Origin: Podarcis cretensis
Lineage: Eukaryota
Length of the DNA: 64,000 nt
Assembly: GCA_951804945.1 (NCBI GenBank)
Contig: OX638161.1
Span: forward strand, 40,114,001 to 40,178,000
Direction: 5' to 3'
Part shown: positions 10,346 to 51,552 of the stretch, piece after piece
Position numbering within the stretch: the stretch's first letter is position 1
Layout of the letters: every line of letters begins with the position of its first letter
Position numbers and translations under genes: made by a program
The notes under the pieces: model-generated
What the model saw: the letters and a program-made list of their open reading frames with translations, nothing else
Told to the model about the DNA's origin: nothing
The model's database searches: none

Positions 10346-10902
10346 GTCAGAAAGTATGGAAAGGGAACTGTTATTTCCCCACGCTAAAAGACTCGCCAGA
10401 TCCAGTGCTTTTGTATAGTCTTGAGAGTAAGAATTGCTGTGCAAAAGTCTTTAGCAAGAAAGTGGCCGCCTTTAAGAATATATCTTGCAATTGAAAGCAT
10501 AACTTTTACCTCGAGAGATCATATTTTTTTCCTGTTTTGACAACAAACAAACGTGTTTTTTAATGAGTGGTATTTCTTAACGGGAATATGAAATAAATTT
10601 CGAAAACATGACTTGAATCGGTGGTCTTTCTAATCATTTCTTCTTTGGTTGATAAGTTTTATTTACAAGCTGCTGGGCGACTGAAGATGCCACATGAAGG
10701 GATAAAGAATCTTCAGATAAAATATGTCTGATTTTCAAATTCCATAGTTTTTGCTTTAATGGAGTTAATAGTGGCTACTGGCACGCTTTGGTATTGTTAC
10801 AGATTATGGCTAGGCACCTAGTATTTATATCAGTGTGCTGACCTTTCACCAGGGCTATGTATAAATTTAACAGTAAATTGCCTGTTAATGGCGCCACGTA
10901 TA

Positions 10903-11144
10903 CAGTGGTACCTCAGTTTTCGAACATAATCCGTTCCGGAAGACCATTCGAGTTCTGAAATGTTCGAAAACAAAAAAATCAATAGTCGACAGCTAGGCCT
11001 CAGGATCTTTCACTCAGTGGAAGCCGTGTGGCATGTTCAACTTCCGAGGCATATTCGAAAACCGAAGCATTTATTTGCAGGTTTACGGTGTTCAAAAACT
11101 GAAATGCTCGTCAACAGAGAAGTTCGAAAACAGAGGTACCACTG
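10903..11144. mobile_element. Tigger/mariner-like MITE
   Basis: TIR CAGTGGTACCTC...GAGGTACCACTG, TA at the left flank. Confidence 0.8.
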
Positions 11145-11722
11145 TGTGTGTGTATAAATCAAAATCACAAGCATGGGTCCAGCTGGGATTTGAACTCAAG
11201 ACTCCTTGGCCAAGTCCAGCACTCAGTCCATTACACCACACCACCTCTTGCTTGCTAATCTGTGAACAGATATGCAGGCTGTACAGTATATGAATTCACT
11301 CATGTATATGCACCGGTCAGGGTTTTCACTTGTTTGTTCATTTGCATTTTATTTAAATATATTTTGGAAGAGGTGGCAGTGCCAGCTGCTTTGAGTGGTT
11401 CTTCAATCCCTTCATGGACAGAACCTGATGTTTACCCAGAATGCATCTTATGGCAATTAACCCAACATGCTTTGCAGCTTTCCCCCCCTTCCCAATTCTG
11501 CTTGCTGTGATTATTGCAAGGATAGCCAACCTGGTGCCCTTCAGATTATAACTCCCAACAGCCGCAGCCAGCATGGCCAATGGCCAGGGATGGTGGGAAC
11601 CATAGCTGACCAACATCGGGAGGGTGCCATTTTGGCTCTCTCCGATGGAATGGGCGAGAGATGCATTGTCCTTTCCCCCTCCAGATCCTGGAGGGAAATG
11701 GGAGAGGGGTTCAAGCGGAGTG

Positions 11723-11728
11723 TTTATT
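11723..11728 (-). terminator. Polyadenylation signal of the uncharacterised gene
   Basis: AATAAA on the minus strand, 40 nt after the TGA at 11769. Confidence 0.55.
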
Positions 11729-11768
11729 ATTCTCTCTTGTGAATACAGTGGGTCTGGAGCCAGGTTGA

Positions 11769-11906
11769 TCAGGTGTCCTCAGACAAAGCCTCTGGCTGGT
11801 CGGTGTCGCTGTCCAAATTCTCTGGCTGAGGCGGATCCTTGCGCCGAGACACTTTGCTCAGGAACTTGCCTGGCCCACCCTGGCGGGACGGGCAGCAGAT
11901 CAGGGG
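11769..11906 (-). CDS. Uncharacterised gene, terminal coding exon (PLICCPSRQGG...ALSEDT*, or alternative frame ending 11779)
   Basis: Acceptor ttttcttccttccctgcactacag; AATAAA at 11728-11723. Confidence 0.68.
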   Translation of the reverse strand, partial: PLICCPSRQGGPGKFLSKVSRRKDPPQPENLDSDTDQPEALSEDT

Positions 11907-14900
11907 CTGTAGTGCAGGGAAGGAAGAAAATGAGAAGCAAAACACAGTTTCCAAGCACCTCCTCCTCCACCAACACCCTGACACTGAAAAAGTCTGTTTC
12001 TTACTTGGCATAGAATGTGGCTATGATTATACCAAGGAACGTGATGATTTATGGTCAAAAGTTCCCCAGCTCTGGACTTGGTCCTGCTGGAAGTGTGGGG
12101 TTAGGGTTGCCACCCTCCCAGACGGAAACAGACCTTGCTCTTTTACATGTTTCATATATTCACTGAAACACATCCAAAATTAAAATTATCCCTGGCAACA
12201 CAATTTCCCCCAAAGTTGGCAGTCCACCCCCAGCCTTGCTAGTATAAAACCCGTGACTGGAGTGTGGTGATGCTAAACGTTTCAGAATTTCTGAAAATAA
12301 GAAAAATGGAGTGTTTTATAGTCCCACGCATGAGGGAAATCCTCTTCTTTCTCCCTCCTCCCTCAGCCTGGATGTGGGCAGGAGTCACAGCTGATACCTG
12401 GATGCATTCTGCACAGGTTGGGTTGAGGACAGGAGAAAGAGAGGGAGGCTCCATAGAAGAAGAGATTGTGGCTTGCCGGAATGCAAAGACCCACATCTGC
12501 TGAAATTCTTGCTTTTGCATAACTATGAAGTATGGCAATCAGTGTGTTGGACTAGGAAGAGCTGGATTCAAATCCACAACAAAGCATGATGCTTGCAGGA
12601 TGACCTGGAGGCCAGTAACAGTTGCTGTCGGCATAGCCTATTTCGCAGGGTTGTTCTGGGGATAAAATGGGAAAACCCTAGATTTGCATCTACAAATGCA
12701 ACATTCCGCAGCTTGCAGAAAAGATCCACCGGTGTCACTATGTGTTGCCTTGCAAACTGTCAAGCAATTATTCACAGCTTTAAGGACTCCAGTTAAAAGT
12801 CTGTTTGCTTTGTGGTATAATCAATGTAACCCTAGGGGCACCCTACTTCTTGTCTGGAGTTGTGACTCACAAGTTGTGGATGGGGCCTGGCAGGCTGTCC
12901 TCCCTCCCTCCCTCCCTTCCACATGGTCTCCTGTCCAGTCTCTCTTTGTCTGCTTAGAAAAGCAGAGATCAGCTGATGACAATGTTCCCATTAGTGCATT
13001 CCTATGCCAGGGAAAGCAGTACCAGTAGATTTGTAAGTCCTTGTAGTATAACAGACTTTAAAGTGTTGGACTAGGACCTGGGAGACCAAGGTTCAAATCC
13101 CGACTCAGCCAGTGAAGCTCACTGGGTGATCTTGGGCCAGTCACTGCCTCTCAGTCTAGCCTACCTCACAGGGTTGCTGTGAGGGGGGGGGAATGGGAGG
13201 GAAGAACCAAGTACACCACCTTGAGCTGCTTGGGGGGGGGAAGATTGTACATAAATGTAATAAATATACATCAAACAAACAAATCCTGCTCCTCTTGCCT
13301 CTACCACCTGTCCTCTCCAATTTTCCCTGGTGCCTTATGCCCAGAGAGTCAATACCTGAATGGTGTTGAGGTCCTGCTCAGATACTAGGGGAGAAAGCCC
13401 CTCCACGCCAGCCGAGGGGGACCGTCGGGGCCGGCGCTGGGTCACATACCCCATCTGATCTTCCAGAAGCACAGTCTCCACCTGGTAAGGGAAGAAAGCA
13501 TCTTCAAAGCCATTTTTCAGTCTTGGGAGTCAAAGCCCACACACATACTACTACTAGCATTAACAAATACGAGAGATGACCTGTGTTAGGGTTTGCAGCA
13601 AAAACAACAGATGGCCTTGTGGCACTTTGAAGACAGACGGATTCATTACCACATCAGTTTTCACAGACTAGCACAAGAGGAGCTGTCCTCAGCTGGCAGA
13701 TTAGGCACACACAAGTACAGAGGGGAAGACAACCCCCGCCCCGTATTTAGGGGTGGGACCCAAAAGCTATTAAATGGAAGAGGTAGGGCCTGTCACATTG
13801 TCACAGTATATTTCTATCTGCCTACTGAGGATACATTTCCTGCATTTGGTATAGTGGCTGCTAGTTTATGCCACAAAATTCAGGCTTTAAAGTACCACAC
13901 AAGACCCCTCTGGTTCTTTAGTGGGAGCCACAGAAGGGCAGTGCCACTGAGCACATGCAGAATCTCTCGCTCACAACTTAGCGACCACAGGCAGCTTCCC
14001 AAATGCCATATTCCTTAGGAAAAATAGGTTCCCAGGCCAGAACTCCAGCACCTTCTAGTTTAGAAATGAAAGGGGGGCAGAAGAGCCATGCTTGGTCCAT
14101 ATCAGCCCCTGCTGGCAGCCACCTCTGTAGCCAAGAAACTTGCAAACTCCTCAATGGGCTGCAGCATGGCATAAATCTGCAGTTTGGGTGGCTTGTAAAT
14201 AGAAGCTGAGACCTGTCAAATGGAGGTCTTTTGAGTATCAAAGTGGGGAGGTTTGAGCAGGGGCAAGAATAATGAGGAGAAAGGAGACAGGGTAGTTACA
14301 AATCTAAAGGGATGGTTAAATGTGTCAGGAATATGAATGACAGAATGGAGACAAGCAATTCACAAAGTGTCATGACTGATACATTAGAAACCATGCAAAT
14401 TACACGTGCCCCACTTTCACTGGGCAGCCCCTCCTTCCACGACCTTTTGTGTCTTTCTTGCCAAGGCGGCTGGACACAAGTTTCAAAAGTAGCTCCCACT
14501 TTGTTTGGGGCCCTTCTTCTTCTCTCTGTTGTGGGAGGGGGAGATCCTGTTGCAACTGATCCGCAAGGATCAGGCTCAGCATCCAGCCTTGCTTTCTTGT
14601 ATGTGATTAATGTCTCCATTTATTTCTCTGACCAATAGCGGACCTCAAGGGATCCAAAGTCGCTTGGTGGGGAGCCGGGCTGCAAAAGCCAACCCCGATT
14701 TCTATAATGATACGAAACAGCGGTTTGAGGGCACGTACTTGCTTATGGCGTGAGGGGTTTCGGCCTCGAATCTGCAGAGACAGACCCTCCTCTTCCTCTG
14801 TGCAGTCCACATCCTGCTGTGGGAGAAAAGGGAAGGATGGAAGGGGGGGACCCAGAAGCAACCCCTCTCTCCCCCCCCCTTATTGGGCCCCTCCTCACTA

Positions 14901-17900
14901 TTTCATAGGATCTCCATAGTGCTTCCTGCTATTTCCATTAAAAAAAAATGATATTTGGTTTTACAAGTGTAAAGATACAACAGTACCACAGTACCAAGTA
15001 CGTATTCATATTTAGAGATTTCTCGGAATCTCCAGACTTCCCACCATCCCCTCCCTGGGTCCTACTGTCAACATTTTCAACACTGTATTATTTCACAATC
15101 CATATTCTATACCTCCTCATGTTGTCCATAGTGTTTGTTACAAGTGTTATTAAAACCCTGCTAATGTTTTCATCTGCTTACAGTGGTCTCCTAAATATAT
15201 TAATTTTTTTGCTTCCTGTTACTTCCTGATTCCCCTTAGCCCCTCCTACTTCAGATTAAGCCCCACCCACCTCAGTCAGCTGTCAGGCCTGAGGCCAGCT
15301 GTGCCGGGCTCAGAGCCCACAGCTGACGTTGCCCTTTATTATTAACAGTGATAATTAAATCTATATACCACCCTCCATCCAAAGATCACAGGGCAGTTTA
15401 CAGCATAAAATACAAAAGGAAACACAAAATACATATCACAACAAAAGGGGGGAAAGCCAGTCACCCTATCCCGCAAACGCATTAAAAAGGCCATAAATTG
15501 TTTGCTCAGCCAAATGCCTGTTTATACAGAGTTATTACATAACACAGGTGAGACACGCATACGCTCTGTTGCTACCTGGCCCCTGGCACTTTTCTGGTCT
15601 CTGGATCTGGTGGTCTCTGGATCTGGAAATCTCTGTTTAAATTTGAGAGTACCAACAACTGCTCTGTGGGGAGGGTTTTTAGGAAGGCAGACAGCGAAGA
15701 AATAGAACCCAGAGCTTGCTCCTGTGGCACCTGGACTGCCCTCTCCCCTCACAGAGACATCAACCATCCTCTTTTTTATCACTAATTTCTGTCAAGAACA
15801 CAGCTGAGGAGCAAATGGTTAAATTGCACCTCCCCATCTGCTGTGGTCATAATATATAACCACCTCCGAGCACTACATTTAAAAAATATTCTGACGTGGC
15901 TGCAAGCATGGGCATAGCTAGGGTTTTTGTTAGGGAGGGGCAGACATCCTGTTAGGTGGGGGGCAGAACCTCAGTTTGCTGTGTATTTTTATTGATTTTT
16001 ATTGATTATGGGGGGGGCAGCTGCCTCTCCCTGCCGCCCCTCGGCTATGCCCATGGCTGCAAGCCTAGACCCTTGGCTTCAAAGCTGTAATGCATCTCAG
16101 CATGTGCCGAGTGCCTTCCTCTCGTCAGAGGGCAGATTACAACCAGCCCCTGCTCATCAAAACATTTAGGTTGAAGACCAGAGGGGACGCATATCACTCA
16201 CTCTTTCACAGGCACAAGAGGATATGAAGCACCGGAAGTCATGACCCCCTCCTTGAAGGCCATCATCACTAAGATCTGGTCTGGAAAGAGGAGCATGGAA
16301 ATAAAAGCATATATATATATAAAGTGTGGAATTGTAGAGTTGGAAAAGACCCTGAGGATCATCATATAGTCCAACCCCCTGCAATGTGGGAATATTCAGC
16401 CATCCCATACAGGGAATGAACCTGCAACCTTGGCGTTAGTTATCAGCACCACGCTCTCCCCAACGTTAAAATGATGGGTTTGCCCCACAAGGGCCTCCCA
16501 CAAGGTCACTCACGGACAGGTGAATTCAGAGCCTGGGCTGGGTTCTCGTCTGGCTGGGAATCCTGGCTTGCACTTCAGAACAGGGTGCAGGAGTGCTGCA
16601 AGGCAGGAGGAAACAGTGGGGTGGCCTTCTTTAATGATTTATATATCCTGCACCTTCAACACAAATTTACATGTGCAGAGCTGCTGGCAAGGCAGTAAGA
16701 AGCAAAAGTAAGAAAATAAATAAAGATAGCAATTTATTATTATTATTATTATTGCCCACAAGTTATTACAGCAAACTAAAACAGCAGCAGTCCATTGAAG
16801 GAGAGAGTAAAAACTGGACTGCACTAAATTAAAAATGGTAACATTAAAGGTAAAGGTACCCCTGCCCGTACGGGCCAGTCTTGACAGACTCTGGGGTTGT
16901 GCGCCCATCTCACTTAAGAGGCCAGGGGCCAGCGCTGTCCGGAGACACTTCCGGGTCACGTGGCCAGCGTGACATCGCTGCTCTGGCGAGCCAGAGCCGC
17001 ACACGGAAACGCCGTTTACCTTCCCGCTGGTAAGCGGTCCCTATTTATCTACTTGCACCCGGAGGTGCTTTCGAACTGCTAGGTTGGCAGGCGCTGGGAC
17101 CGAGCAGCGGGAGCGCACCCCGCCGCAGGGATTCGAACCGCTGACCTTTCGATCGGCAAGCCCTAGGCGCTGAGGCTTTAACCCACAGCGCCACCTGCGT
17201 CCCTTAGCAGCTCTTTAAAAAGAAACCTGGGAAAACAGAAATAAGACTTCTGCTAGGCCCTAAATGGTAGGGCCCACCATATTCGCTTTAACATTTTAAT
17301 ATTGTACTTCTAAAGCTCTTGTAACCTGCCTTGGAATAGCATGGTGAAGTGCAGAAATACGGTGAGCAATAATAATTCTAGCAGCAAGAGCTCCAGGCAG
17401 GCCTCCTCGGGGAGTACAGTGGTACCTTGGCTTACGAACTTAATCCGTTCCGGAAATCCATTCTTAAACTGAGGCGCGCTTTCCCTAATGAGGCCTCCTG
17501 CCGCCAGTGCCCTTCCACCGTTCGGATTCCATTCTCAGACTGAGGTAAAGTTCTCAAACCGGGACACTACTTCCGGTTTTCAAGAGTTCGTAAACCGAAT
17601 CGTTCAAAAACAGGACTGTTCTTAAACCGAGGTACCATTGTATATGCCACAGTTGAGGGCCACCCACAAAAAGGCTCTGTTGCTCCATTCACCGTGCCAC
17701 ATGTCATCTGAACCCTGCCTACTCTCTCTCAGTAGCCCCGCCCATTCTTATGGAGGCCACACCCACTGAATTCTTAGCTTCACGCAGAACCTGAAGTAGG
17801 TAAAGATATGGGGGTCAGTGGGTGTGACCCCCATAAGAATGGGCGGGGCTACTGAGGGAGTAGGCAGGATCCAGATGGACAGCGACAGAGACGACGGGTG

Positions 17901-20054
17901 TCCAGGCAGAAAACAAATTCCCAGCACCAGGGATATTGATACTGACCATTTTCTGTACGTCGGATGATGGTGCAGAATTCAGAATAGGGTAGCGGGGGCT
18001 CTGTCAGGAGCTGGAAGAGCCCTTGGTAGTCAGGGGGGTTCAGGAACCCCAAAAGTCGCTCGGCCAACCCCCGGGCTGCCATGTAGCTCAGCCGGGCCTG
18101 GGCCAGGGACTGCTCTGCATGGAAACAAGCGAGCTGGAGAGAAGGCAGAAGGGGACAAGTCATGGCTATGCAGGCTTTGAGCCCCACACAGTTGTCTCTA
18201 GAAGCCATGCCAGGCCCCAGATACAAGAGATTCCTACATAAAACTGCAATAAAAAGAGCTCATTTTTGTCATTCTTAACCGTGCCATGGGTCTTTTATAA
18301 ATGACAACAATTTTATTCATTTATTTTTAAATCTTACATACTGATTTATTTACAAATCTTCAATATCTTTTCATTTATAAGCTTACAAATCTCAAAGAAG
18401 TCCACAATACGCAAAAACCATTAAAATAACCACTGAAACGTCAACATACTCGTATAATTGCAGCAACTCCAACAGCTTGAACAACAACAAAAACAGTCAG
18501 GAAATGCCCAAGAAAAAGGAAACTTCTTAAAATTTATGGCCTGTACTACATTGAAGGAAAATATAATGAAAATGGTATACAGATGGTATGTAACGCCAGT
18601 ATAACTGGCTAAAATGTATAAAACATGTAATAAGTGTTGGAAATGTAAAGAAAAAGAAGGAACATTCTATCATATGTGGTGGGAGTGTAAAAAGGTGAAA
18701 GGCTTCTGGGAAATGATATATAATGAATTGAAAAAGATGTTGAAATATACGTTTGTTAAGAAACCGGAGGCCTTCCTACTAGGATTGGTAGGTAATGAAA
18801 TAAATAAGAAAGACTGTAAACTTTTCCAATACGCAGTAACAGCAGCGAGAATACTTCTGGCCCAAAGATGGAAACAGGAAGAAATTCCAATGGTGAAAGA
18901 ATGGAGAACGAAATTGACTGAATACGCAGAATTGGATAAACTAACAGGGAAGATTCGATACCAGCGAGACCAAAAGTTCATCGAGGACTGGGGGAGATTT
19001 ACAGACTATCTGAAAAGCATATGTGATGAACAGATAACGCTTGTTGGTTTTCAAGAGACTCTGTGAAAAATTAAGAAATATTGTAAAAAAGAGTAAGAAG
19101 GGAGAGGTGATTTTTAAAGGCAATATTAAGCTTAGAAATGTGTTAAATAATATAAATTTAAAACGAAAGATTGGCAGAGAAACTGAGGGAAGTCAAAAAA
19201 TAGATGAATGTGTGACAAAATGTGAATGGATTGTATAAAATTGTTGTTGAAAATGAATAAAAATGTTATTAAAAAAGAAAGAAAAAGGAAACGTCTTTAA
19301 CAGTCTGTGAAAGCACCCTATTGTTGGGTGCTTGCTGATCTCCTTCCACAAAATGGGTGACAGAGTGTAAAAGCCCCCCTCCTTTGGCACTGGCAGCAAA
19401 AGTGCTAAAGGCTGGTTGTTACACACCTGTCACAGTGGCTGTGTACACACACCTTACATTTAAAGCGCATTACTTTCCCCAATGAACCACGAAGTTTGTT
19501 AAGTGATCAGGGCATTGGATGGAGCCAGTGTTAGAATATGTGTGGGGGGGTTCAGGGTTCAAATCATCCCTCAGCCCAAGGTTGGGTGTCCTGGGCTAGA
19601 AACTATCCTTCAGCCAGGCTTCCTCAAACCTGGCCCTCCAGATGTTTTTGGCCTACAACTCCCATGATCCCTAGCTAGCAGGACCAGTGGCCAGGGATGA
19701 TGGGAACTGTAGTCTCAAAACATCTGGAGGGACAAGTCTGAGGAAGCCTGCTTCAGCCGAACTCCCAGTGTACTCTCTGTGTGCAAAGGCTGAGAAATGA
19801 TATTGGGAGTTTTGAGCAAGGGAATTATTTCTCTCATTCAGTCTCTCTAATACTGGTCATTCCTAGAGCCTGGGCTCAGGTACCTGAGCAGACTTTTGTG
19901 CTTCCACAGAAGCCTGGACCATTTTGGCAGTGCCGGCCACAGTGTTCACCAAGTACTCAGCCATGGCTTCCGATATTCTGGGTGCAAAGCCAGTTGGGGC
20001 AGCTTTATCGTCCTGAGGAGGGCTGTTCCTGGGGGTGCGACAGCTCTCTTCCAT
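11769..20054 (-). CDS. Uncharacterised multi-exon protein-coding gene (286 aa, or 310 aa with the cassette exon)
   Basis: Exons 19884-20054, 17947-18133, 16514-16595, 16202-16280, 14739-14816, 13356-13481, (12871-12952) and 11769-11906 all have polypyrimidine-AG acceptors and GT donors. Phases 0,1,2,0,0,0 chain into one open frame. Kozak AAAATGG at the start; AATAAA 40 nt after the stop. Confidence 0.75.
12871..12952 (-). CDS. Uncharacterised gene, candidate cassette exon (QTKRDWTGDHVEGREGGRTACQAPSTT)
   Basis: Acceptor ctctgcttttctaag(cag), donor CTT|GTGAGT; 82 nt, open in phase 0. Confidence 0.5.
13060..13268 (+). mobile_element. tRNA-derived SINE with L2-like tail (copies at 20365-20590, 48445-48660)
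   Basis: B-box GGTTCAAATCC, conserved core ctcagcctaacctacctcacagggttg, A-rich tail. Confidence 0.7.
13356..13481 (-). CDS. Uncharacterised gene, coding exon 6 (VETVLLEDQMGY...EQDLNTIQ)
   Basis: Acceptor ctttcttcccttaccag, donor CAG|GTATTG; 126 nt, open only in phase 0. Confidence 0.72.
14739..14816 (-). CDS. Uncharacterised gene, coding exon 5 (QDVDCTEEEEGLSLQIRGRNPSRHKQ)
   Basis: Acceptor cccttttctcccacag (NAGNAG), donor CAA|GTACGT; 78 nt. Confidence 0.72.
14940..15210 (-). mobile_element. L1-like 3' end fragment
   Basis: Composition and gacttcccacc motif resemble the 3'UTR of the 18524-19278 element in reverse orientation. Confidence 0.4.
15907..16055. mobile_element. hAT-type MITE
   Basis: TIR CATGGGCATAGC/GCTATGCCCATG with perfect 8-bp TSD GCTGCAAG. 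Confidence 0.85.
16202..16280 (-). CDS. Uncharacterised gene, coding exon 4 (PDLSDDGLQGGGHDFRCFISSCACER)
   Basis: Acceptor ctcctctttccag, donor AGA|GTGAGT; 79 nt. Confidence 0.72.
16324..16460 (-). mobile_element. SINE with tRNA-Ile-like head and CR1-like tail
   Basis: Reverse complement reads gagcgtggtgctgataac...ccaaggttgcaggttc, then ggggttggactatatgatgatcctcagggtcttttccaactctacaattc. Confidence 0.55.
16514..16595 (-). CDS. Uncharacterised gene, coding exon 3 (ALLHPVLKCKPGFPARREPSPGSEFTCP)
   Basis: Acceptor tttcctcctgccttgcag, donor CC|GTGAGT; 82 nt, converts phase 1 to phase 2 as the next exon requires. Confidence 0.72.
16846..17203 (-). mobile_element. Full-length Sauria SINE
   Basis: tRNA-like head GGGACGCAGGTGGCGCTGTGGG...GGTTCGAATCCC, typical body, ACCTTT-repeat tail, CpGs retained (young). 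Confidence 0.9.
17417..17640. mobile_element. Tigger/mariner-like MITE
   Basis: TA-CAGTGGTACCT...AGGTACCATTG-TA. Confidence 0.8.
17703..17880. repeat. Inverted repeat, arms of about 66 bp and a 45-nt loop
   Basis: 17703-17769 is the near-perfect reverse complement of 17815-17880. Confidence 0.9.
17947..18133 (-). CDS. Uncharacterised gene, coding exon 2 (LACFHAEQSLAQARLSY...RRTEN)
   Basis: Acceptor ccttctctccag, donor ATG|GTCAGT; 187 nt. Confidence 0.75.
18524..19278 (+). mobile_element. 5'-truncated L1-clade LINE (ORF2 C-terminal CCHC region + 3'UTR)
   Basis: ORF 18614-19066 CWKCKEKEGTFYHMWWEC; AATAAA 19256; 14-bp TSD AAGAAAAAGGAAAC at 18510-18523 and 19279-19292. Confidence 0.9.
19615..19750. 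mobile_element. hAT-type palindromic MITE (related copies near 2670, 11530, 28540, 34940, 47570, 52740)
   Basis: TIR CAGGCTTCCTCA, flanking CTTCAGC duplication, core ccctccagatgtt...ctacaactcccat. Confidence 0.8.
19884..20054 (-). CDS. Uncharacterised gene, first coding exon (MEESCRTPRN...VEAQKSAQ)
   Basis: Acceptor ctctctctttcttag at 20062, ATG 20054, donor CAG|GTACCT. Confidence 0.72.
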
Positions 20055-22156
20055 TTTGGATCTAAGAAAGAGAGAGAAAGATGGACACTGGGCAGAGAAA
20101 GGAATGTGTAATTGGCGATAAAAAGAAGTAGGAGCAAACAGCGGCTGAAAGAATCCATTTCAGAAGCAGTTGTTGGGCCATGAGGCTTGACTTTTCTATC
20201 CAGAGCACGAACCAGAGCTATTGTTGTTTCTCTCTACCGGGCCTGAAGATGATGATTCTGAGCTAGAGTATCTTTTATCCTTCACTGAATTGCTGGAACA
20301 CATGATTTTGAACTTGAGACATGTATCCACAACATGCATTGTTAATACTATGGGAAGATCAGCACAGTGTTAGTGGTTAGAGGGTTGGATTAGGACCTGG
20401 GTTCAAATCTTCACTCAGCCATGAAGGTCACTGGGTAACTTTGGGCCAACCGCTGCCTCTCAGCCTAACTTGACTTACAAGGTGGTTGTAGGGATTAAAT
20501 GGGGTCAGGGGGAACCATGTACACTACCTTGAGTTCCTTGGAGAAGAAAGTAAGATATAAATGCAATGAACTAAATAAAAAAAAAAAAAGCTGAGCCCAT
20601 TGCTTGCCATTTATTCTCACATGAATCTCTCCAGTGACTGAGATCATTTAAGGAGGCCCAAGGCTGAGGACTTTCATCTTACCAGCAGTGGGGGCTTTCT
20701 GACTAGAGACATTTCAATGATGTAAATCCCCGCTTTTCTGCTTGCTTAAAAATTTAATTTTTAAACACCAGGTAAAGATTAGCTTGTTTCTTCAGGCACT
20801 TCATGGCTTTTGAAATGGCTTTGAGAAATTCACCCCTGCAAGTGCACTCCATTGTCTTTTGAGATGGATGGAAGCCAGCCACAACCGTGAGAGATCCAGC
20901 CACTCTAAACTGTTCCCATCTACGGCTGGTTGAGGACACAATTTGTCGTTTACCTATCATGTATTTTAGATTGACATTTTAGAACATACACTGTCTTAGA
21001 TTCTTTTTTAATTATCAAAGGATGGGATAAAAAAACTTTAAATATATTGGGGAGAAAGATCATAAGTCTTCATTTCTGGTGTCCCCGTAAAAAAGTAAGT
21101 TAGCATAGGCTCATATTTGCAATAAGTGTGGCTTCTGGACCTGTCTCTGAAGCAATTTGTTGTTGCTTTCGTTTCTTAATATTACTTTCTTAATTTGTAT
21201 CCCATCACGGAACACAAGATGGCATAAGGGTGGTCACCTATGACCAGGCCTAAACCTTCTCAGCTTCAGGACTCAAAAAATACCCATCACTGAAATTTTG
21301 CAGGCAACGCAGAGCTCCTTGGGAAAACACAAGATTTACCCTTCCATTAACCAGCAGGTGCAGACTATTGTATCAGGAGAAAGCAGAGTTACAGAAAGAA
21401 GTTACAGACTTCTGCCTTCCCTGAGGGCAATTTTTGCTCTTAAAGCAGCAACCACAAGCTTCTCTCTTGTTTATGACTAGTGCTGTGAATTAAGATGTAA
21501 GTCCACATACCTCTTTACTCCCCGCCCCCCTTGCTTGCAAATGTGATATGAGCAGAGTACTGCCACTTTTCTGCTTGCTTTGTGTGTGCATGTGTCCACG
21601 ACTAAAAATGCAGAAACAGGATAAGAGGGACTGACTGATGGGAGGCACTCTCAGGGGCAATCACAAACTTGATGTAGCCCCTAGTGCACTTCTGGAAACC
21701 ATGTAGCCTGCAACTAATCCTGAGCCAGGACTGTACGGTAAGCGGGAGAAAGCGCAGGGCACCAACGAGTGCACTGCTTTAACTGGGAAAGGTAGACAGC
21801 GCTCCCTTCCATTCCACATACCTACACAGATAAAGTAATTCTAAAGTGCTGGATTTTGTCAGCTGATTCCACTGTGCCCAATATTAAGTGGGAGTTTGAT
21901 GTACCAAGGGTGTTTGCTAGGTGGCTTAGGAAGCTGCTCTTGTGAGTCAGGTCTATTTAGTTCAGTACTGTTTACACTGACTGGCAGCATGGCTTGCAGG
22001 GTTTCAGGCAGGGCGTAACTTCTGCAAGTCCTACCTAGATTTGCAACGTATTGAACCCGCGACCTCGTATGCTCCCAATGACACAAATTCGCATATGCTA
22101 CCACAAAGTACTGCCTCTGAACGAATTAAAAAGAGGGTAAGTGCCTGGGGTCTTAC

Positions 22157-22188
22157 CAACACTGTATTTTACAGCATTCCCAGCTGCC
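22157..22188 (-). other. Candidate 32-nt 5'UTR exon of the uncharacterised gene
   Basis: Long pyrimidine tract + ttttgtttacag acceptor and TTG|GTAAGA donor; another strong donor CTG|GTAAGA at 20683. Confidence 0.45.
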
Positions 22189-22511
22189 CTGTAAACAAAA
22201 GTTTTTTTAAAAAAGAAGGAAAAGGGGGGGATTTTTTTGGAGGCACCCTCTATCAATGCCTCTGCGGCCCACACTTAATGGACAGGACTCTCTCACTGAG
22301 TACGAAGGTGGTGGCCTGGAAATTGAGCAACTGGGAACACAATGTGGCTTAGTGGCAAATGCCCTTCCTATTCAGGGGACTTCACCTTCACACCTCCCAT
22401 TTTCTATGCAGAAAAGGCCCTTGAGCTCTGTTAAGATACAAACCATCAGCCCCTTCCTTCCCTTTCAAGCCCCGTCCTGTGGGGGTAGGATGCAACCAAG
22501 ATGCTCCTTCA

Positions 22512-22578
22512 ATTGGTAGCCAACTGCCAGGGATGCAGTTGCCATGGGAATGCTTCCAGAGCCCAGTTGCTAGGCGAT
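22512..22578. promoter_or_regulatory. Two RFX X-box-like sites plus a CCAAT box (candidate promoter of the uncharacterised gene)
   Basis: GTTGCCATGGGAAT 22538-22551, GTTGCTAGGCGAT 22566-22578, ATTGG 22512-22516. Confidence 0.5.
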
Positions 22579-22864
22579 GGAATTCCTTGTAATGTAAGAG
22601 GGTTGAATGTTTCAGAGGCAGAACAGGGCAGGCCTGCAGAGGCTGAGATGGAGCACATATACAACGGCAGGCTTGTGAGTAGGGGAAAGAGGGTCTTCCA
22701 GAAGGAAATGCATCCTTCTGTTATTATCAGATAAGTGAATACACACACACACACATATATTTAGATACTGCTAGTAGTCACTTGAATTCAACTTGCTTCT
22801 GAGCCCAAGAATATATATTTTTTCCCAAGTCTGAGAAGGAAGGGATATAGATTTAGGGAACTCC

Positions 22865-23376
22865 AGCACCGTAATTGTTGTTCAATATCTTTATAAATAA
22901 CTTGGATGAAGGTATTGAGAGGATGCTAATCAAATCTGCTGATGATGCCAAACTGGGACAGGTAGCCATGCTGCTGAAAACAGAATCAGGAATCAGGATG
23001 ACCATAAAAAACTAACAAAATTGATTTCAATAGGGACAAATGTCAGGTTCTACACTTGGGCAAGAACAACCAGCTGCAAAAAAATATAAAATGAAGGACT
23101 TGCCAGTAGTACATGTGAAAAGTATTTAAGTGCCTTAGTAGACTGCTCAACATGTGTCAACAGCCTGATACTGCAGGAATAAAAGCTAATGTTATCCTAG
23201 GCTGCATCAACAGGAGGATACTGTTCTGACCAAGAGAAGTCGTCCCCGCGCTCTATTCTGCTTTGGTCAGACCACATCTGTGTCCAGTTCTGGGCACCAC
23301 AATTTAAGGATATTGACAAATTGGAACGTGTGCAGAGGAGGTTGACCAAGATGATAAAGGGTCTGGAAACCAAGTC
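22865..23376 (+). mobile_element. Degenerate CR1 LINE reverse-transcriptase fragment
   Basis: LFNIFINNLDEGIERMLIKSADDAKLG and downstream VQFWAP / [16 protein letters not shown] segments with frameshifts. Confidence 0.85.

Positions 23377-27465: not shown

Positions 27466-51552
<24,087 letters not shown>

Follow-up and report, generated by a model that had tools for sequence, protein, structure and literature searches.

The proteins annotated at the lacertid loci LOC114582816, LOC128400908, LOC117058054, and LOC118095513 are the closest described counterparts of the gene considered here, which is found between TAOK2 and CDIPT in a 64,000-nucleotide (nt) stretch of the Podarcis cretensis genome (contig OX638161.1, positions 40,114,001 to 40,178,000), hereafter called the window. 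The window gene shares with these loci its seven-piece coding structure, the length of its product, 286 amino acids (aa), and a one-codon isoform that stems from a tandem acceptor. The lacertid RefSeq records come without name, domain, or function, and a literature search under twelve LOC identifiers of the family found no paper. The window gene is a real and already annotated gene of an uncharacterized family without known relatives, and it is of modest interest.

Among other described systems, human CDIPTOSP, a multi-exon "CDIP transferase opposite strand, pseudogene", is transcribed from a position directly upstream of CDIPT (PMC11211608), and a preprint treats its mouse equivalent in name, Cdiptos, as a gene (bioRxiv 10.1101/2025.05.26.656183). 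Similarly to the window gene, these are small multi-exon units placed directly upstream of CDIPT, but they lie on the strand opposite to it, whereas the window gene and CDIPT are both on the minus strand; no public record links the mammalian units to the lizard gene. At the protein level, geminin and GEMC1, which are short coiled-coil regulators with disordered, phosphorylated tails, resemble the product of the window gene by a single heptad helix of about 60 residues (Z 6.3-6.4) and by a disordered region with proline-directed sites. However, they have no sequence similarity with it, the match is no better than those with dozens of unrelated long helices, and neither a destruction box nor another defining motif was found in the window protein.

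The identity of the gene follows from its match to public records. The exon translations are collinear with XP_028559948.1, the Podarcis muralis "uncharacterized protein" of LOC114582816: exons 1-6 match exactly and exon 7 at 44 of its 45 residues, the one tail residue that differs (L for S) being located in the acidic cluster. The exon pieces abut on the RefSeq protein, with one residue between them at two split codons. In addition, the cluster of the Podarcis lilfordi protein includes RefSeq entries from P. muralis (286 and 285 aa), P. raffonei, Lacerta agilis, and Zootoca. An earlier reading of the window, made from the sequence only, had taken the gene to be unrecognized. This claim fails because RefSeq holds the identical model, which is public as an uncharacterized protein in P. 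muralis, P. raffonei, P. lilfordi, L. agilis, and Zootoca. Exact collinear substrings of an independently annotated protein, together with splice joints observed in RNA-like data, place the exon model beyond chance. The window gene is very probably the Podarcis ortholog of LOC114582816 and a genuine, transcribed protein-coding gene, and its identity taken together with the architecture of its product can be held with good confidence.

The gene has seven coding exons on the minus strand, from 20054 to 11769, whose boundaries were read from the sequence and which form one 861-nt frame; the window sequence contains zero N. Its parts are given below, X1 being an RNA-like run of a related organism ("organism A") and UTR standing for untranslated region.

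20054-19884, minus strand: exon 1, coding part; 171 nt, 57 codons, phase 0 donor; residues 1-57 exact in XP_028559948.1.
18133-17947, minus strand: exon 2; 187 nt, most of the conserved helical domain; residues 58-119 exact in XP_028559948.1.
16595-16514, minus strand: exon 3; 82 nt, entry phase 1, exit phase 2; joints 17947/16595 and 16514/16280 in X1.
16280-16202, minus strand: exon 4; 79 nt, least conserved part of the protein; joints 16514/16280 and 16202/14816 in X1.
14816-14739, minus strand: exon 5; 78 nt, acidic patch and RxRxxS site; tandem CAG/CAG acceptor.
13481-13356, minus strand: exon 6; 126 nt, most conserved core with the RRSPS and SPLVSE motifs; junctions based on ortholog proteins.
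11906-11769, minus strand: exon 7, coding part; 138 nt including TGA (11771-11769); 44 of 45 residues in XP_028559948.1.
11070..11768, minus strand: probable 3' UTR, with AATAAA at 11728-11723, 11353-11348, and 11075-11070; suggested by the length of an X1 contig.
20055..20468, minus strand: sequence 5' of the ATG, contiguous with exon 1; 7 upstream ATGs; in a 1812-nt X1 contig.
18134..18476, minus strand: sequence directly 5' of exon 2, in some X1 contigs; out of frame with exon 2.

All six introns read GT..AG, with phases 0,1,2,0,0,0, and each in-frame exon translation is open. The start ATG (20054-20052) is in a strong Kozak context (A at -3, G at +4), and a stop in the same frame occurs 108 nt 5' of it. 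At the other end, the nearest AATAAA (11728-11723) starts 43 nt past the first base of the TGA, and others start at 11353 and 11075. The seven exons, canonical splice sites, interlocking phases, 861-nt frame, Kozak ATG, and nearby AATAAA of the sequence-only reading were thus recovered at every boundary, with four joints in X1 and a collinear RefSeq protein. The CpG observed/expected ratio is 0.09-0.35 at 19500-23000, and no CpG island surrounds the start of the gene; the G+C content is higher, 0.53, in the 5' region of CDIPT at 8-10 kb. A scan of window positions 10500-23000 with Rfam found no RNA family.

Evidence of transcription comes from the contigs of X1, which were aligned on window positions 14720-20719 together with three runs of a second organism ("organism B"). 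The X1 joints 16202/14816, 16514/16280, and 17947/16595 are exact to the base, each at a depth of 141.3, which is also that of a 1437-nt X1 contig covering exon 2 (17947-18130) with 1 mismatch; the joint 19884/18133 has a depth of 82.8. The four joints examined in X1 all read CT..AC on the plus strand and hence GT..AG on the gene's own strand. Organism A has four small RNA-like runs, X1 among them, and each contains about one tenth of the words sampled from an 8.4-kb stretch, a portion that is roughly mRNA-sized. Once exons 2-7 are subtracted from the 1437-nt contig, approximately 747 nt remain, which fits the distal AATAAA at 11075 and suggests that the 3' UTR extends to about 11070. In exon 1, six of the seven differences listed between a 1812-nt X1 contig and the window are synonymous, a proportion that is indicative only. 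An independent spliced transcript of the family is provided by a 1214-nt Logan contig, which encodes a complete, skink-like ortholog of 290 aa and groups with a skink in the phylogenetic tree.

The 5' part of the transcript bears on the relationship of the window gene with its neighbor. The window exons share their strand and direction with TAOK2 and begin about 6 kb downstream of it; they might then represent alternative 3' exons or read-through products of TAOK2. However, exon 1 has its own ATG in a strong context, preceded by the in-frame stop, and in every public record the protein is annotated on its own, with a length of about 280-340 aa. Furthermore, the 1812-nt X1 contig (19884-20468) terminates precisely at the donor of exon 1 and continues for 414 nt of genomic sequence upstream of the ATG with no break or acceptor. 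An origin of these exons in TAOK2 transcripts is accordingly very improbable. The contiguity of the 414 nt indicates either a long 5' leader with seven upstream ATGs or that the contig is derived from unprocessed RNA.

Some variation in splicing is apparent. The exon 5 acceptor (14814-14818) is the tandem CAG/CAG, of which the X1 contig uses the upstream site. In isoform X2, a 285-aa form that RefSeq gives for P. muralis and P. raffonei, exactly one codon is absent, the Q at the start of exon 5. A 383-nt X1 contig at 18107-18476 and a joint 18475/19883 at a depth of 69 may reflect an alternative acceptor near 18476, some 343 nt 5' of exon 2, or a retained piece. In P. lilfordi, a 230-aa isoform that begins at exon 2 is annotated.

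Very deep contig bins are present in all four runs at 16320-16519, 16720-17720, 18520-18920, and 19520-19880, in introns 1-3. They represent transcribed, high-copy interspersed repeats, and their location agrees with the earlier statement that transposable elements are confined to the introns. One of these intronic repeats harbors a 150-aa open reading frame (ORF) on the plus strand (18614-19066), with no Pfam match. Window positions 17720-17919 have zero depth in the four runs, and the X1 joint between exons 2 and 3 skips this whole stretch.

The product is predicted to be acidic and soluble: the P. muralis ortholog has an isoelectric point of 5.1 and a mass of approximately 31 kDa, and no membrane segment was found (maximum 19-residue hydropathy ≤1.17). 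When the lizard protein was modeled by AlphaFold2 with an 18-sequence alignment, helices were predicted at residues 29-86, 93-99, and 107-122, with a predicted local distance difference test (pLDDT) score above 90 for residues ~30-125 and below 50 after residue ~130. The Ala-rich helix at about 27-88, small folded segment, and disordered tail proposed from the sequence are matched by these helices and scores. The coelacanth model has counterparts of these helices; its long helix is interrupted at one point, and a short helix of low confidence covers the HKQVE stretch. The hydrophobic moment of the long helix peaks at 102.9 degrees, and three positions of each heptad are apolar and rich in Ala. 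The helix carries an indel of exactly 7 residues (columns ~177-183 of alignment A1), which squamates and the alligator lack and which turtles, axolotl, coelacanth, and sharks possess; as this is one heptad, it would be tolerable for a helix packed in register. A prediction of self-association with two copies of residues 22-128 gave a score of 0.02, which speaks neither for nor against dimerization.

Conservation is distributed unevenly along the protein. Identity between the lizard protein and those of axolotl, coelacanth, and shark is 58% for exon 6, versus 14% for exon 3 and 8% for exon 4. The invariant positions of alignment A2, which was derived from the most divergent members, are S.H.Q.E followed by MGG, RRSPS, G.SPL, and acidic residues, all of which are present in exons 5-6 of the window gene. 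The tail motifs kept from sharks to lizards are an RxRxxS site that precedes HKQVE, the basic RRSPS, an SP-L-[VL]-[ST]-E stretch with acidic residues after it, and an acidic cluster of the DSD type at the end. Lacertids have two deletions of 2 residues within this conserved core, and the python protein keeps the core with changes at otherwise invariant positions. As for the CxxxxCxC cluster pointed out in the sequence-only reading, it is specific to lacertids in the alignment and is not a conserved feature.

The view that the protein matches no known family was upheld, as Pfam, PDB sequence, and fold searches gave no relative. Searches of Pfam with each exon gave sub-threshold matches only, and those with 18 full-length members gave only sub-threshold, non-recurrent ones. 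Thus, FIGL1_N (PF24347), for which the cut-off is 27 bits, matched residues 4-32 of exon 2 with a score of 13.3 (E 0.075), and P53_tetramer (PF07710) matched exon 5 alone with 14 bits against 20.7; both were absent from the 18 full-length members and were rejected. Neither exon 6 nor either of the profiles, A1 or A2, retrieved a PDB sequence below E=1, and a Foldseek search against the PDB returned no match. In the ESM Atlas, the lizard ortholog gave a blank result, and the template-modeling (TM) scores of the coelacanth protein were all <0.3.

What the protein does can be approached from its two parts. The helical domain (residues ~28-122), whose 58-residue helix carries a heptad-spaced stripe of Ala, Leu, and Val, would most likely be a protein-binding module, while the motifs of the disordered tail have the appearance of basophilic, proline-directed, and CK2-type phosphorylation sites. 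RxRxxS resembles a basophilic site, the SP dipeptides in a basic run resemble proline-directed sites, and the terminal DSD-type stretch resembles a CK2 cluster. SP-x-x-S/T followed by acidic residues is spaced like CK2-primed, GSK3-type double sites and like some phosphodegrons; it is also near the LxxIxE phosphatase-docking motif, which it does not match. Given both the phosphorylation-type motifs and the helical binding module, the protein may be a phosphorylation-switched adaptor or regulator, in which phosphorylation of the tail would recruit or release a partner. This is a tentative proposal, and the protein might well act otherwise.

Several observations weigh against the picture of a transcribed gene that encodes a phosphorylation-switched adaptor. 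The putative phosphorylation sites are read from consensus motifs, and the wide VIA-align search yielded generic long helices only, with Z ≤6.7. The annotated proteins of colubroid snakes lack the exon 6 core together with the first part of exon 7 and have an almost invariant N-terminal domain, which indicates that the tail is not indispensable everywhere and that the two parts are separable. With regard to the transcript, read support covers four junctions, those between exons 5 and 6 and between exons 6 and 7 resting on ortholog proteins and on the room available in the 1437-nt contig, and the three organism B runs cover the intronic high-copy repeats only and none of the exons.

The chief alternative to an adaptor or regulator is a coiled-coil protein with a mainly structural role, such as one in the cytoskeleton, the centrosome, or the cilium, whose tail would only tune assembly and not serve as a signaling switch. 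The heptad periodicity of the long helix and its one-heptad indel are consistent with such a role, as are the colubroid proteins, which keep the N-terminal domain and drop the tail core, and the best fold matches, which are coiled coils of axonemal, kinetochore, and myosin proteins (Z ~6.5). On the other hand, Z scores of this level are deemed uninformative for long helices, one helix of approximately 58 residues is short for a structural rod, and the tail core encoded by exon 6 is more conserved than the helix across vertebrates. A structural role is thus considered unlikely.

The distribution of the family was investigated with queries of two kinds, exons of the window gene and full-length ortholog proteins. 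Exon 2, searched against 1.84 billion representatives of any length, retrieved proteins that come from snakes, geckos, and turtles and bear only the names hypothetical or uncharacterized. Two further matches of exon 2 were to metagenomic tandem-repeat proteins, aligned on a 15-residue or TPR-like repeat, and these are not relatives. The full-length searches covered proteins of ~0.55-1.75 times the query length, roughly 160-550 aa. With the gecko protein as the query, they yielded 31 family members, and orthologs from chimaera to squamates were found at E 1e-14 to 1e-133. The members come from many squamates, turtles, alligator, axolotl, coelacanth, two catsharks, bamboo shark, and elephant fish, so that the suggestion of a lineage-restricted gene is not supported: the orthologs extend to sharks and chimaera. 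A profile search with A1, limited to 8000 candidates, gave no further taxon and nothing else up to E=0.1; that with A2 likewise gave no further taxon, and nothing between E 1e-25 and E 1. A 147-aa family fragment from the turtle Platysternon megacephalum has been deposited as "transcription initiation factor TFIID subunit 6", which is probably an annotation transfer error.

No member was found in mammals, birds, teleosts, or frogs among the proteins of ~160-550 aa covered by the full-length searches, nor in mammals by the length-unlimited search with exon 2, itself too weak to reach the coelacanth. Given this length window and the weakness of the exon 2 search, absence here means "not detected" only. 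The sequence-only reading had also raised the possibility that the gene was lost in mammals. The blank searches fit this idea, and they fall short of proving it, since they were confined to proteins in that size range.

A maximum-likelihood tree with one sequence per species has supported groups that agree with accepted relationships. In it, lacertids join Rhineura, and supported groups comprise skinks plus the cordylid, turtles plus the alligator, the geckos, and the snakes. The axolotl, coelacanth, and cartilaginous fishes fall outside; the deeper branching of squamates lacks resolution, and the root is arbitrary. The Alligator mississippiensis ortholog, of 383 aa, has a very long branch (1.61), an odd composition, and a long, unrelated N-terminal extension. 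These oddities may reflect accelerated evolution or decay in archosaurs, in which no bird member was found. The family, unnamed and with one copy per species in the tree, dates to the ancestor of jawed vertebrates. The split between sharks and tetrapods makes the gene about 450 million years old.

The frame might also be suspected to be a chance or decaying ORF in a non-coding transcript. The lack of a CpG island at the promoter region and the seven upstream ATGs of the putative leader could be read in this manner, as could the long branch of the alligator ortholog. In contrast, the frame is open with invariant residues from lizard to shark, the listed substitutions are biased toward synonymous ones, and the structure of the N-terminal domain is predicted with confidence; a chance or decaying frame is therefore extremely improbable.

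The neighborhood of the gene was established from its flanking exons. A CDIPT exon with the CDP-alcohol transferase motif is found at ~8470, and exons of a TAO-family kinase, whose best solved relative is TAO2, are found at 51450 and 48059, all on the minus strand. The placement of an intact gene between CDIPT and TAOK2 is thus borne out, and the order on the minus strand is TAOK2, window gene, and CDIPT, in one direction as a tandem. In humans, SEZ6L2, ASPHD1, KCTD13, and TMEM219 lie between CDIPT and TAOK2, and these two are on opposite strands. The differences in order and strands between lizard and human point to an inversion in one lineage. A table of human genes lists SEZ6L2, ASPHD1, KCTD13, and TMEM219 in that order (PMC11211608).

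The location next to CDIPT also raises the question of whether the window gene is the reptile counterpart of mouse Cdiptos and human CDIPTOSP, in which case it would already be named in mammals and would have decayed to a transcribed pseudogene in human. The window gene ends about 1 kb upstream of the 5' region of CDIPT, and in human CDIPTOSP fills the interval just upstream of CDIPT (PMC11211608), with Cdiptos regarded as a gene in mouse (bioRxiv 10.1101/2025.05.26.656183); besides, the full-length searches are blind to short proteins. The orientation argues otherwise, as the window gene is arranged tail to head with CDIPT on the same strand, whereas the mammalian unit is on the opposite one by its name. 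Moreover, no family record from a reptile, shark, or coelacanth is named Cdiptos, and the length-unlimited exon 2 search found no mammal, although it was too weak for the coelacanth. This correspondence is quite improbable.

A different history may be envisaged, in which an ancient family unlike any described was kept in slowly evolving lineages, namely cartilaginous fishes, coelacanth, salamander, turtles, crocodilians, and squamates, and was lost independently in mammals, birds, teleosts, and frogs, the mammalian loss being perhaps tied to the rearrangement of TAOK2 and CDIPT. This scenario is regarded as doubtful, if conceivable.

RefSeq already lists the locus, so that gene catalogs gain nothing from it. 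The addition is a description at the level of the family, which is ancient and without domain assignment, and in which a helical module folded with confidence is paired with a very conserved core of phosphorylation-type motifs. That the family is undetected in mouse, chicken, zebrafish, and Xenopus would explain why it has remained unstudied. The window gene is located inside a block syntenic to human 16p11.2, a heavily studied region, and an ancestral gene of this block that is absent in humans, or kept only as a pseudogene, would be of some comparative interest. If the independent losses were true, a regulatory module once present in the 16p11.2 neighborhood would be lacking in humans.

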